Shown: positions 5,040-56,810, counted from the first letter of the stretch. The stretch: DNA of 64,000 bases from Anolis carolinensis (GCF_035594765.1 NC_085842.1:10043256-10107255), one strand, 5' to 3'. Notes: generated by a model not told the origin, from the sequence alone. Numbers and translations: made by a program.

Positions 5040-6007
5040 CCAGTCCCGTCAGACCTACACTTCAGGTTCCCAAGCGACACATTATGAAGCGGGGAAACCT
5101 CACCGAGCGGAGGCGGAGAGAGGAGGCTGCTTCCCCGACATGACCCGTCCACGCAGAGGTGCCTCCCGCTCCTTGGCCTGGCCCCCCCTTCTCCGCTTCA
5201 GCAGCCTGCCTGCAATGAGGAGCGGGCCAGGAGAGTCCGACCCAGAGGCGGGAAGGCGCCGGCGAGTCTCCCTGGAGACGGGTGACGCGGAGAGACGAGG
5301 CCGATTCCGATTGGCCGATCCCTTAGTGACCGTTAACGGCAGAAGGGCGGAGCGGGGGGCGGGGCGGGGGCGTTCCTGCCAGGAGACCGATGACGCCAGA
5401 GAGGAAGGCGGATTCTCATTGGCGGACGCTGGGCGTTGAGAGGAAGGAAAGAAGGGGCGTGTCTGTCCGCTTCTGTCTCTCCGCTTCTCTCGGGCCCCGC
5501 CCCTCTGTGGGAATCCTGCCCGCGGCCGCCATGTTTCTTGAGGGCGGAAGTCCTGCGAGAGGCGGGGAGACTCGGGGTGGGCGGGGCCGGGCGGCGCTCT
5601 TTCCTACCAGCGCCTTCGAGGGAAGGAAAGAAGGAAGGAGGCCTTTCGGAGAGAGAGAGAGAGAGAGAGGAGGGGGTGAGTGGGACTCTGCACCGAGATG
5701 ACGCCGCTCTGAGAGGAAGGCGGATTCTCATTGGGCGTTGGGAGGAAAGGAAAGAAGGGGCGTGTCTGTCCGCCTGCCTCTCCGTCTCGGGCCCCGCCCC
5801 TCTGTGGGTCTCCTGCCCGCGGCCGACATGTTTCTTGAGGGCGGAAGTGCAGCGAGAGGCGGGAACACTGGGGGGGGAGGGGCCGGGCGGCGCTCTTTCC
5901 TGTCAGAAGGAAGGAAGGAAAGAAGGAAGGAGGCCTTTCGGGGGGGGGGGGGGAGAGAGAGAGAGAGAGAGAGAGAGAGAGGAGGTGAGTGGGGGGAGGG
6001 ATGGGGG
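5040..6007 (+). promoter_or_regulatory. CpG-island promoter 1 with putative non-coding first exon(s) of B1
   Basis: Very CpG-rich; GC boxes, TGACG, ATTGG, GCGGAAGT (ETS), GCCGCCATGTTT (YY1-like); GTGAGT donors at ~5676 and ~5985; homologous to 24600-25140. Confidence 0.75.
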
Positions 6008-6253
6008 NNNNNNNNNNNNNNNNNNNNNNNNNNNNNNNNNNNNNNNNNNNNNNNNNNNNNNNNNNNNNNNNNNNNNNNNNNNNNNNNNNNNNNNNNNNNN
6101 NNNNNNNNNNNNNNNNNNNNNNNNNNNNNNNNNNNNNNNNNNNNNNNNNNNNNNNNNNNNNNNNNNNNNNNNNNNNNNNNNNNNNNNNNNNNNNNNNNNN
6201 NNNNNNNNNNNNNNNNNNNNNNNNNNNNNNNNNNNNNNNNNNNNNNNNNNNNN
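6008..6253. other. assembly gap (N run)
   Basis: 246 N. Confidence 1.
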
Positions 6254-6298
6254 GCCTATTCATTCAAATGCGCTCTGGAACAACCATGTTTTCAATTC

Positions 6299-6785
6299 CT
6301 CTCGCTCCCGCCTTTGTCTCAAATGCGGCTGGTGGGGACGAGGGAGGGAGAGGGCCTTCTCGGCAGTGGCCCCCCGGCTCTGGAACTCTCTCCCTAAGGA
6401 GATCAGGTTAGCTCCTTCCCTGCCCATTTTCCGCCGGGAATTAAAAACATGGATGTTCCAGAGCGCATTTGAATAAATAGGCCCAATAGAGCTGTCATCA
6501 GAATACTTCTTTATGTTTTAAAAGCATATGGCACTTTATTGCTGTTACTTATTTCCATTAAACAGCACTTTATGAAACCTGTCCCCACTGGTTTGCTTTT
6601 AATTACTCTGATTTTATCTGCTTGGATTTTAATGTATTTATTATTTATTTTGTGAGTCTGGAATGTTTTTGGTCAAATGTCTTGTGTTGTTGGTTTCGGG
6701 CTTGTCCCTGTTGTAAGCCACCCCGGGTCCCTTTGGGGAGATGGGGCGGGATATAAAAATAAAGTTTATTATTATTATTTATATT
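6299..6785 (+). mobile_element. L2 LINE 3' end with (TTA)n tail
   Basis: RAFSAVAPRLWNSLP...ELKTWMF*; L2-type 3' stem-loop tgtaagccaccccgggtccc...; same family as 28450-28975 on the - strand. Confidence 0.85.
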
Positions 6786-6987
6786 ATAACAGATTTCATA
6801 TGCAATAGAGTAACAGTGTAAATCAATGTTTCTCAACCAGGGGGTCGGGACCCCTGGGTAGGTCACGAGGGGGATGTCAGAGGTGTTGTCAAAGACCATC
6901 AGAAACACATATTTCTGATGGTCTTAGGAACCCCTTTGGCAGTCCTTGTGAATGTGATCAACAAATTCTCTGGTTAATTGGGGACCA

Positions 6988-53215: not shown

Positions 53216-54961
53216 GTTGGAACCACTCTGGTGAAGAACCCAACAGTATCCAAGATGCTTTTCCTTCCTCTCCTTTCTTTCAAGGGAAGGAAATCCCTCC
53301 ACAGGCTCTACTCCCAAATTCTCAGCCAAAAATCACATTTCCTCTGTGAAAGAAAGGCAGAAAGGTTGTGGGACCAGGCTTTTGAGCAATAGTAGCAGCA
53401 GAAATGACAACTATATGATCCAAGGTATAATGACAGACTGCGTTTGGACTTGAAATGTATATTTATAAAGGTTTGAATGTAATTTAATTTAAATGGAATT
53501 TTGAAATGTGATTGTAGTTGTTTGATATATGTGTTTCATATTGTAAGCAGAACCAACTGCTACAGACAAAAAACAAGCCAGCTGGGAAGCTGCATCAATT
53601 TCTTCTGAAAGATTTTACAATTGATGAAGAAATTAAAAAACCTATGATTCAGTGGGTGAAAAGTCTAGGCTGAGCAATACGTCCACGAGAATGGGAAGAG
53701 CTCTGGTAAAAATGACTAAAATTTACAAGGAGTCACACAATTAAATAAAATTTCAACAAAATGATACATAGATGGTACATAACTCCAGAAAAACTCTCAA
53801 ATACACACACACACATGATATGTTGGGACTTGCCCAAATTCTAACGAATTCTGAATAAAAATCCACACAGACATGGAAACTATTCTAGAGTACAAAATCC
53901 CATTAAAACCATAACTTTTTCTACTGGGAAACATCAAGAAAGACTCTTTCTTTATATGACAACAGAAGCAAGACCTGAATACGCAAAACTATGAAAACAA
54001 CAAGACATGCCAACACCAGAAAACTGGATTACAAAAGGTTTTGAAATGGCCAAATAGGACAAACTAACTTTAGCTGTACAACAAACAAATACACAGAAAC
54101 TTCCAAGAAGAATGGAAGCCATTCATTGAATTCACAAAGCAAAGGAAGATGGCCACAGCAGGATCTGTTGACTAAAATATTATTAATAGTATACAGTTAC
54201 ATTTTGTACTATTTCTGAACTCTTTATTCAAGAGACTTTGAATAATTGACCTATCAGCACTCTTTGATTAGAACACAAAAGGTTGCTAGCCTTGTTAATT
54301 AGGTATTTTAGAGCGACAACATATATATTAATACATATTTGTGTAGTGTTTAAATAAAAGAAGATAACAACGTAACATAGTGAATTCTTACCCACACAAT
54401 CCTAATTTACTAACTAATGGAATTGATATTTTAGATCTATATGGCAGTCGTTATGATATGAAATACATGCAAAGAACTGGAAAAGAAGGCGGGAAGGAGA
54501 GTGGATAGTGTGGGAAGGCAAAGTCCTGAGGACAAGAGTGCATTCGTTTCTGTCACAGAGGACATTTGGATCTTCCAAAACTTTAGACACTGTCTATAAT
54601 ACTAGGAAGACAAGGCTTCTCTTCCCCCCTCCACCCCCTTCCTTTTCCTCATGATACAGAAGACATTGATATAGTTCTTTTAAAAAATATAGACACCCCT
54701 TGTTATACAGCAGACGCATAATATTCAATATTCAAAACAATTCTACAATACATTTTTGCATCCACTGTTATTTTCACCCATATATATATATATATTATCC
54801 CATACCACCGTGTGTGTGTCCCCCGTCCCCCCCAAGCAATTTCTTTGATACCTCATCTGTCCCAAATTTCGTTTCCTCTTGTGGAGGTCATTCTCCATCC
54901 CTCCATCTCAGGCCAGGAAGGAAGGAGTGAGAGATGGAGGCGGGACACACAAATAAAGTTG

Positions 54962-55130
54962 TTGCTGAGGTGTTCCTGCGAGTATCTTTGTAGATCTTAG
55001 GAAACTATTTCTTGATTTAAGGCATTGACATGCTGGCTGATATCCAAAGAGGGGATGGGCCAGAGATGTCACTGCCTTGGTCCTTTCATTACAGGCTGCT
55101 ACTTCCCCACAGATGTCAGATGGTGCCATA
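54962..55130 (-). mobile_element. short LINE fragment (Vingi-like)
   Basis: HPLFGYQPACQCLKSRNSFL motif. Confidence 0.55.
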
Positions 55131-55749
55131 ATAATCATCATAATCATCATAATAAATACCATTTCATTTCTAGACTGCCCTCTCTCCCCAGAGGGACTCA
55201 ACAGTATCATTTCTCCCGTGGTGTGGGGCGCAGACATCCTGTGAGGGTGCGGCATGTCTCATGAAGAGCCACGTCCACTGTTTGAACGTGGTGAGATGTC
55301 TTCCCCACTGGGCCTGTGAATTCAGCAGCAGAGGAGCCAAGCGCCTGTCTTTCCAGGGCCTGGTTGGGATCCCCAGGTTGTGCCAGTCAGCTTTTGTACC
55401 ATGTGATTTCTACCACCCACTTTTGGCTTGAGAGTCAAGCAGGGCTTCTTGTTGATTGCTGTCTTGTATATTGTTCCTGTTTTGTATGGGATCTTTCTGT
55501 GAGCCACGCCGAGTCCCCTCTGGGGGAGATGGTGGCAGGATACAAATGTTGTTGTTGTTGTTGTTGTTGTCCCTTTGTCTGCATGTCCCTCTGTTGTGAA
55601 TGTCCATGCCAGCTGATCCCTGGGGGCCCCTCCCTTTCCGAGCGCCCTTCCTTCCTTCCTTCCTTCTCTTGGTCTGTTGACCTCCCTTCCCCAGTCCCTT
55701 GCTCTCTCTCTCTCTCTCTCTCTCTCTCTCTCTCTCTCTCTCTCTCTCT

Positions 55750-56810
55750 CCGCAGTCTTGAGGTGGAGGTGAAGGGGAGGCCTGCGGGGCCTGAGGGGAG
55801 GCCTTCTGGGAGTTGGAGTCCAAAACCCCGCCCCGGAGGGAGGCCCGGAGCTTGCCCAGGCCTGGCTGAGAGAGAGAGAGAGAGAGAGAGAGAGAGAGAG
55901 AGAGAGAGAGAGAGAGCGGTGGTGGCCTGTGTTCCCAGGGAGAGAACGAGAGAGGAAGGCCCGCCTGGGAGTGGGCCAGGCCCGGGCCCTCCTCGGCCTC
56001 CCCTCCCTCCCTCCCTCCCTCCCTCCCTCCCTCCCTTGGGCCTTGGCTCCTCTTGGGCCCTCGGGAGGAGGCCTGGCCACGAGACTCACCAGGACTGACG
56101 AGGCGGAGGACGAGGCCNNNNNNNNNNNNNNNNNNNNNNNNNNNNNNNNNNNNNNNNNNNNNNNNNNNNNNNNNNNNNNNNNNNNNNNNNNNNNNNNNNN
56201 NNNNNNNNNNNNNNNNNNNNNNNNNNNNNNNNNNNNNNNNNNNNNNNNNNNNNNNNNNNNNNCAGGCCTCGGCCTTCCCAACGGTCACTCAGCCCGTCAC
56301 ATGACCCGCGGGCGGGAAGGCCAGGGCGAGGCTGCCCGGAGACTGGTGACGCGGAGAGACCAGGCCGATCCCCATTGGCCCATTTCTGGAAGGACCCTTC
56401 ACGGCCCAAGGGCGAGGGGAGGGTCGGGGGCGTTCCTGCCCGGAGACCGATGACGCGCGAGAGGAAGGCGGGTTCCCATTGGCGGACCGTGAAGCGAAGG
56501 GGGGAAGGCGGGGGGGGGGGGAGAAGCGCCTAGTTCCCTCAGGCGAAGCCCCGCCTTCCACCCTTTCCTGTGAGCGCCCTTCGAGGAAGAGGGAGGAGGA
56601 GGAGGAGGAGGAGGAGGAGGAGGAGGAGGAGGCCTTTCGGGAGAGAGAGAGAGAGAGAGAGGAGCAGGTCAGGGGCAGCTGGGGGAGGGTTCGGGGTCCC
56701 TGCTGACGGGCCTCCCTTCCCCGTCCGGCCTTGGTCTGTCTGTCTGTCCCGGGGAGGCTGCGGCCTGCTCGGCCCTCCAGGCCCTCTGCGCATGCGCCTT
56801 CCAAAACGGG
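55750..56810. promoter_or_regulatory. CpG-island promoter 3, between divergent C2 (-) and A2 (+); contains gap 56118-56262
   Basis: - strand donor ctg|gtgagt at 56090; two fixed-spacing modules; MYB site CAACGG 56279; NRF1 site TGCGCATGCGC 56787-56797. Confidence 0.8.

Follow-up and report, generated by a model that had tools for sequence, protein, structure and literature searches.

A paralogous promoter cassette with CRE-like and inverted CCAAT motifs in the CpG islands of an Anolis carolinensis zinc-finger gene cluster

A window of 64,000 nucleotides from Anolis carolinensis (GCF_035594765.1 NC_085842.1:10043256-10107255), which contains SCAN-domain and C2H2 zinc-finger (ZNF) genes, carries seven modules of the form GGAGAC-N3-TGACG-N22-ATTGG. 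These seven modules are paralogous copies of one promoter cassette of ~65 bp. The cassette is probably a family-specific NF-Y/cAMP-response element (CRE) module of CpG-island promoters, duplicated and constitutive, in which the ATTGG and TGACG blocks have predicted binding factors and the third block, containing GGAGAC and termed block 1, is left unassigned. A sequence-only reading of the window had likened the modules to the X1-X2-Y boxes of major histocompatibility complex (MHC) promoters and had proposed that an MHC-type enhanceosome may drive this ZNF family. The evidence presented here favors an inherited promoter element of an ordinary kind and does not prove an enhanceosome of that type.

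Results

The composite pattern matched exactly at seven sites, all on the plus strand (starts at 5274, 5382, 24149, 24727, 24836, 56338, and 56442), whereas 0.00 matches were expected from 100 dinucleotide shuffles of the window. These sites are the seven composites that had been located earlier by their TGACG at 5283, 5391, 24158, 24736, 24845, 56347, and 56451. The pair TGACG-N22-ATTGG alone retrieved the same seven sites (0.09 expected), and a search for the composite with three mismatches allowed revealed no further copy in the window (0.36 expected). When both strands were scanned for TGACG and ATTGG with 15-35 nt between them, only the seven N22 sites and one additional copy at 5699 were obtained. 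This eighth copy, which the sequence-only reading had also described correctly, has an N26 spacer and is devoid of GGAGAC. The second block reads TGACGC in six of the seven copies and TGACGTCA in the remaining one, and it always begins 3 nt past block 1. The TGACGTCA at 24158 is the sole full CRE of the window and was found as previously reported, as was the inverted repeat GTCTCC-CT-GGAGAC at 5266-5279. Two assembly gaps are located at 6008-6253 (gap 1) and 56118-56262 (gap 2). Both lie in non-coding DNA, so that reading frame is not at issue, and the runs of N are untouched by the modules, the nearest distances being 75 nt (from the gap end at 56262 to 56338) and 273 nt (from 5734 to 6008). 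The count of seven (plus one) copies is a minimum, since the gaps could hide another copy; the collinearity of the flanks with the paralogue across the gaps was uninformative.

The copies are distributed over three promoter regions, P1, P2, and P3, and fall into two subtypes, all on the plus strand. Subtype A comprises the modules at 5274..5314 in P1, 24727..24767 in P2, and 56338..56378 in P3, the last of which is the module that starts 75 nt past gap 2. The P1 copy of this subtype reads GGAGAC-N3-TGACGC-N21-ATTGG, and its upstream arm makes the derived inverted repeat mentioned above. Subtype B comprises the modules at 5382..5422 in P1, 24836..24876 in P2, and 56442..56482 in P3, together with an older copy, B0, at 24149..24189 in P2, which holds TGACGTCA, and the altered eighth copy at 5699..5734 in P1 (TGACG-N26-ATTGG), in which GGAGAC is lost, the spacing is increased by 4 nt, and 10 nt are deleted after ATTGG. 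Module B follows module A at a distance of 108 bp in P1, 109 bp in P2, and 104 bp in P3.

The similarity of the copies extends beyond the modules. P1 (5148-5684) and P2 (24600-25141) are 87% identical over 561 bp, and P3 matches both P1 and P2 with 80-85% identity over 170-190 bp. The B module with its downstream exon-1 unit is duplicated in tandem in P1 (5389-5684 vs. 5697-5993, 80% identity; the second unit is headed by the 5699 copy) as well as in P2 (24091-24330 vs. 24774-25014, 75% identity). Subtypes A and B are 78% identical over 60 bp; they share a core of ~65 bp that extends from GGGCG..CTGCC-N-GGAGAC to ATTGGC-N-GA, and the similarity of their downstream parts does not exceed that of shuffled sequences (168/500). 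Across the three loci, A copies cluster with A copies and B copies with B copies. This grouping indicates that the A/B split is older than the locus duplications and that no conversion took place between A and B. Gene conversion, considered as a source of the shared motifs, was ruled out on the same grounds; an origin of A and B as units of a ~107-bp tandem repeat was ruled out as well, only the ~65-bp core being alike. As the copies are paralogues and the A/B split is old, the number of independent lineages behind the invariant spacing is two or three (A, B, and B0) and not seven.

In an alignment of the three loci, none of the 32 motif columns was variable, compared with 9 of the 50 spacer columns and 37 of the 113 columns outside the modules (motif vs. 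spacer, p = 0.009; module vs. outside, p = 0.0003). Equal conservation of motif and spacer, which the sequence-only reading had named as the mark of shared ancestry only, was thus not what was found among the eight copies of the window. Six blocks of the same size placed at random were free of variable columns in 47 of 200,000 trials. The comparison of the motif columns with all other columns gave a Fisher p of 7e-5. Invariance was also observed for the GC box, GCCATGTT, and GGCGGAAGT of the B units, in which 112 of the 282 other columns varied. Over these comparisons, 28-40% of the columns outside the motifs were variable.

Comparison of the two subtypes revealed the same tendency. In the core shared by A and B there is no difference in CTGCC or in any of the 16 motif columns, and the N22 spacers of the two subtypes show 44-56% identity in ungapped alignment, compared with 72-100% within one subtype. 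The earlier statement that the spacers differ at many positions therefore holds between the subtypes and does not hold within either of them. The best alignment of the A and B spacers contains 16 matches in 21 positions and, in a GAGAG tract, a pair of 1-nt indels that offset each other, so that the total length of N22 is preserved. The CpG within TGACG was kept in all eight copies. The spacing has changed in one copy only, that at 5699, which is a redundant duplicate on the downstream side. The gradient of conservation from motif to spacer to flank suggests that the cassette is probably functional. The fixed N3 and N22 spacing seems to be mainly inherited, with modest evidence of a constraint on top.

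ATTGG is present in all copies, its reverse complements reading GGCCAAT[C/G]GG in subtype A and CGCCAATG[A/G]G in subtype B. Both types of Y box fit the flank preference of NF-Y and are predicted to be good NF-Y sites. The CRE half-site TGACGC is likewise predicted to fit factors of the ATF/CREB type well. In addition, a loose kappaB-like decamer, GGGGCGTTCC, was observed at 5367, 24821, and 56427, where it abuts block 1 of three B copies. It lies within an invariant run of 16 nt, and neither the A copies nor B0 contain it.

The modules sit in three CpG islands (GC 0.62-0.69; observed/expected CpG ratio 0.61-0.73 vs. 0.38 in the whole window), which are located 4.6-8.6 kb upstream of the plus-strand finger exons, one island for each. 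Island P1 (4901..6007; GC 0.64, ratio 0.73) is ended by gap 1. Island P2 (23851..25250; GC 0.62-0.68, ratio 0.61-0.65) lies between the minus-strand SCAN gene C1 and the plus-strand gene B2, and island P3 (56263..56800; GC 0.69, ratio 0.64), which starts at gap 2, lies between the minus-strand SCAN gene C2 and a plus-strand gene referred to as A-type. On the 3' side of the B-type modules, GC boxes (5495 in P1; 24266 and 24950 in P2), the YY1-like word GCCATGTT (5528 in P1; 24299 and 24983 in P2), the ETS-like word CGGAAGT (5545 in P1; 24316 and 25000 in P2), and a GA/GGA microsatellite are followed by donor-like sites of the GGTGAGT type (5675 and 5984 in P1; 24452 and 25132 in P2). The distance from the B-type CCAAT boxes to the donor-like sites that follow them is 189-267 bp. 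P3 has kept the A+B pair and one GC-rich box, has neither the YY1-like nor the ETS-like word, and contains the donor-like GGTCAGG at 56667. The stretches 3' of the modules may be read as non-coding first exons.

Units composed of module, GC box, YY1-like word, ETS-like word, and donor were observed head-to-tail in P1 (5697-5993) and P2 (24091-24452, the older complete B-type unit, which is headed by module B0). They are candidate alternative first exons. A conserved pyrimidine run, (C)TCTTTCCT, was observed at 5599 (CTTTCCT), 5895, 25054, and 56563; the donor-like sites follow it after 75-105 nt. The run is similar to an initiator of the TCT/terminal oligopyrimidine (TOP) type and is a candidate start site.

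The finger and SCAN exons of the window were confirmed by Pfam, and the plus-strand C2H2 exons are finger-only. The finger exon of gene B1 (9853..10827, open reading frame (ORF) of 324 amino acids) is situated 4.6 kb downstream of P1, that of gene B2 (33380..35194, 604 amino acids) 8.6 kb downstream of P2, and that of the A-type gene (61230..62144, 304 amino acids) 4.9 kb downstream of P3. On the minus strand, gene C1 (SCAN exon 21292..21960, finger exon 17013-18395) and gene C2 (SCAN exon 52658..53329, finger exon 43438-44817) turn their 5' sides toward P2 and P3, respectively, with SCAN exons facing these promoters at 2.2 and 3.0 kb; in a bidirectional promoter the divergent starts of head-to-head genes lie within ~1 kb of each other. 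The homology of the two upstream regions of the SCAN genes stops at 24058/54779, where the C2 homologue is AT-rich. This suggests that the islands are shared with the minus-strand SCAN genes, and P2 and P3 may be bidirectional promoters. P1 has no partner gene on the minus strand.

Two further observations concern the SCAN genes. The region upstream of C1 (23560-24150), beside P2, is far richer in GC than its C2 homologue (54320-54900), with 77% identity and many AT-to-GC differences. Immediately to the left of gap 2, at 56085-56096, the minus strand has a strong donor-like CTG|GTGAGT, at which the first exon of C2 might end. In that case C2 would start within the gap or next to it, adjoining module A of P3.

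Further paralogues were sought at the protein level. A whole-protein search retrieved only generic zinc-finger proteins, and a search restricted to the N-terminus retrieved six proteins, all unrelated. The finger ORFs of the window were absent from the cluster collection that was searched, and a contig search for the encoded finger proteins returned only the window's own region.

With regard to the window as a whole, its two ends (1277-2270 and 63008-64000) are 99.6% identical over 994 bp, so that the window covers about one unit of a very recent tandem duplication of ~61.7 kb, in which the zinc-finger gene block was copied as a whole. Tandem arrays of low complexity, long and purine-rich, were found at 15100-16500 and 38800-42700. 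When translated, these arrays give very long spurious ORFs, in which E/K/R/G abound on one strand and F/L/S/P on the other strand.

Discussion

The promoter regions analyzed here combine a CpG island, CCAAT boxes, GC boxes, a bZIP half-site, and conserved motif columns, which are the characteristics of an NF-Y/CRE CpG-island promoter. Three conserved blocks make up the cassette, namely block 1 (CTGCC-N-GGAGAC), the CRE half-site TGACGC, and a CCAAT box in inverted orientation whose flanks suit NF-Y well. According to the favored reading, subtypes A and B, 104-109 bp apart, would stem from an old duplication, and later duplications of zinc-finger genes, both segmental and in tandem, would have carried the A+B pair, or the B unit alone, to three CpG islands. 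There the cassette stands upstream of GC boxes and, in P1 and P2, of YY1-like and ETS-like words, and is followed by a putative non-coding first exon with a GGTGAGT-type donor at its end. NF-Y, an ATF/CREB factor, and a block-1 factor are expected to bind the cassette. The bound factors would maintain the island in an open state and drive a constitutive transcription of the plus-strand finger genes that is active in the germline, and at P2 and P3 they would probably also serve the head-to-head SCAN genes on the minus strand.

Several points weigh against this reading. The motif columns were partly picked for their invariance, which introduces an ascertainment bias, and GGAGAC is no a priori motif. 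The number of independent lineages is just two or three. The absence of indels from the modules is no more than marginally unexpected (P ~0.07, with about five indels outside the modules counted by eye). Conservation across the entire B module, with its spacers, amounts to ~93%, a level that suggests contacts at more than three points. Lacertid sequence of 72 kb from two SCAN-KRAB-ZNF loci, of Podarcis and Zootoca, contained no composite, which suggests that the cassette is not a general feature of squamate ZNF genes; these loci hold non-orthologous genes with unmapped starts and constitute a weak negative. Only two loose TGACG...ATTGG matches occurred there, both inside a retroelement. The start sites, the first exons, and the bidirectional use are themselves predictions. 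If transcription started at the pyrimidine run near 5599, the B-type CCAAT box would be placed at about -180, beyond the usual CCAAT position of -60 to -100 (PMC4889920).

Among the alternatives, an S-less MHC-type X1-X2-Y enhanceosome survives best, although we consider it rather unlikely. Here RFX5-RFXAP-RFXANK would bind block 1 as a degenerate X1 box, CREB/ATF1 would bind TGACGC as the X2 box, and NF-Y would bind ATTGG as the Y box. Such a rigid complex may recruit CIITA and, with lower likelihood, NLRC5, and the ZNF cluster would be co-regulated with antigen-presentation genes. Human class I X1-X2 sequences are much like block 1 and have the N3 gap too, whereas the X2-Y gap of human leukocyte antigen (HLA) promoters is N20 and that of the cassette N22. 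Four boxes of set sequence, order, orientation, and spacing define the MHC S-X-X2-Y module, which becomes inactive when X is mutated (PMC1802633). The order, orientation, and adjacency of the blocks fit this definition (PMC1802633, PMC2278383), and TGACGC is the core of the MHC class I site alpha, the homologue of X2 (PMC1971071). There are also precedents outside the MHC classes, as the X/X2-Y modules of TRIM26 and RFX5, which have no S box, and the full S-Y module of the Krueppel-type gene ZNF672 have been validated as targets of RFX/CIITA (PMC2278383). In the window itself, GGAGAC is invariant in all seven composites, and the length of the spacer was kept across the A/B divergence.

The probable genomic position of the window also agrees with an MHC-type reading. 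The anole MHC is located at one end of chromosome 2 (PMC9679377), and the window lies ~10 Mb from the start (~10.043-10.107 Mb) of the 325-Mb chromosome record CM069368.1 (GCA_035594765.1). This record is plausibly chromosome 2, in which case the window is probably near its MHC end.

The poor fit of block 1 to an X box may speak against such a complex. Compared with the RFX consensus GTNRCC(N0-3)RGYAAC (PMC5752003), each copy shows two to three mismatches, and ~15% of random 22-nt segments of the window or islands reach three mismatches or fewer, a chance level that has to be seen beside the fact that MHC X1 boxes are themselves degenerate. Both mismatches of GGAGAC fall in the YA of RGYAAC. 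The palindrome at 5266, which the sequence-only reading had taken for an X-box-like element, turned out to be the derived state of a single copy, the other six reading CTGCC[C/A]GGAGAC. Of the resemblance to X1-X2-Y that had been proposed, the order and orientation of the blocks, the X2-like TGACGC, and the Y box were borne out; the invariant spacing within the window is real, and the RFX block stood at chance level.

The lack of an S box is an argument against an MHC-type complex. The S box lies ~16 bp upstream of X at a fixed distance (PMC1802633, PMC4374748). It contributes to CIITA modules (PMC1802633) and is essential for NLRC5 specificity (PMC4374748); the NLRC5 modules are described in the latter paper with 20-22 bp "from the X box". 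In agreement with the earlier remark that no correctly placed S box is evident, no 5-, 6-, or 7-mer within -50 to -8 is common to the seven copies, or to the A set and the B set. At the corresponding position GC boxes occur in subtype B, and the sequence of A and B0 is unrelated. No word of the interferon-stimulated response element (ISRE) was found in the three islands. Furthermore, the modules are embedded in ordinary CpG islands with Sp1, YY1, and ETS words, and RFX5 co-localizes widely with NF-Y on ordinary CCAAT promoters that have no X box (PMC4889920), so that occupancy by RFX5 alone would be no proof of an MHC-type complex. The stronger proposal that an S-less, class-I-like X1-X2-Y cassette was adopted as the common promoter of a large ZNF cluster beside the anole MHC appears improbable.

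Assignment of block 1 to THAP1 (or another factor), which would make the cassette a housekeeping-type element of THAP, YY1, NF-Y, and CRE sites, is also quite doubtful. The reverse complement of CTGCC-N-GGA is TCC-N-GGCAG, which contains the THAP1-binding sequence (THABS) TxxxGGCA in six of the seven copies and has lost it in the A copy of P1; block 1 agrees with this consensus no less well than with that of the X box. A YY1-like AACATGGCGGC is present ~110 bp downstream of ATTGG in P1 and in both P2 units, and in the RRM1 promoter a pair of THABS lies ~100 nt upstream of the start site (PMC2879526). However, the variable positions of block 1 (-4 and -1, in two P1 copies) are located inside the THABS core and the invariant GGAGAC largely outside it. 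With five specified bases the consensus is weak, ~125 matches being expected by chance per 64 kb, and P3 has no YY1-like word.

Shared ancestry only, with motifs and spacing as functionless, neutral by-products of recent duplication, accords with the paralogy of all copies, the 72-100% identity of spacers within subtypes, the two or three independent lineages, and the definition of the pattern after the invariant columns had been viewed, but it is very improbable in view of the motif-to-spacer-to-flank gradient, which is significant under random block placement, of the 16 motif columns and CTGCC that A and B keep while their flanks have lost all similarity, and of the CpG retained in eight of eight TGACG with changed spacing confined to the redundant downstream duplicate.

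If the favored reading of an ordinary inherited promoter module is true, the window provides a clean natural example of a promoter cassette that was copied along with a fast-expanding zinc-finger family. The gradient of conservation would mark the bases that matter and aid the annotation of start sites and first exons in anole ZNF clusters. If, on the other hand, the MHC-type interpretation is true, dozens of transcription-factor genes would stand on the antigen-presentation enhanceosome platform and be tunable by co-activators of the CIITA type, which would bear on the origin and spread of that platform.

Comparison with known systems

The generic NF-Y CpG-island promoters, at which Sp1, RFX5, FOS, and ATF are co-bound (Dolfini et al., 2016, PMC4889920), share with the P1-P3 promoters a good CCAAT box, GC boxes, and a bZIP site. 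The double CCAAT boxes of those promoters are 24-28 or 35-37 bp apart, whereas in the anole promoters a distance of 104-109 bp separates the paired boxes, each of which is accompanied by a CRE exactly 27 bp away. The THAP1 sites of the RRM1 promoter (THABS, PMC2879526) resemble block 1 in the five invariant base pairs, present in six of the seven copies, and in the occurrence of two sites per promoter upstream of the start. They differ from it in that the invariant GGAGAC of the cassette reaches beyond the core and the variable positions fall inside the core.

A closer parallel in architecture is given by TRIM26, RFX5, and ZNF672 (Krawczyk et al., 2008, PMC2278383), where S-less X-X2-Y modules (TRIM26 and RFX5) and a full S-Y module (the Krueppel-type gene ZNF672) are found at non-MHC genes, among them genes of the MHC neighborhood. 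Those sites were defined by chromatin immunoprecipitation (ChIP) of CIITA and RFX and have well-conserved X and X2 boxes, whereas the anole cassette has a weak X, is known from its sequence, and has been multiplied across a gene family.

The S-X-X2-Y enhanceosome of MHC class I and II, Ii, and B2M genes (RFX5/RFXAP/RFXANK, CREB/ATF1, and NF-Y, with CIITA or NLRC5) and the cassette have in common the order of an X-like, a CRE-like, and an inverted CCAAT block on one strand, the adjacency of the first two blocks, a fixed gap of about two helical turns before Y, and a location upstream of the start site. Unlike the MHC module, the cassette is devoid of S box, ISRE, and enhancer A, and its X1 fit is at chance level. 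It occurs in tandem A+B pairs within CpG islands that contain Sp1, YY1, and ETS words, and it precedes zinc-finger genes and not antigen-presentation genes. Given the absent S box and the chance-level X1, membership in the S-X-X2-Y class is not established. By analogy with the MHC module, the cassette is predicted to work like its X2-Y half.

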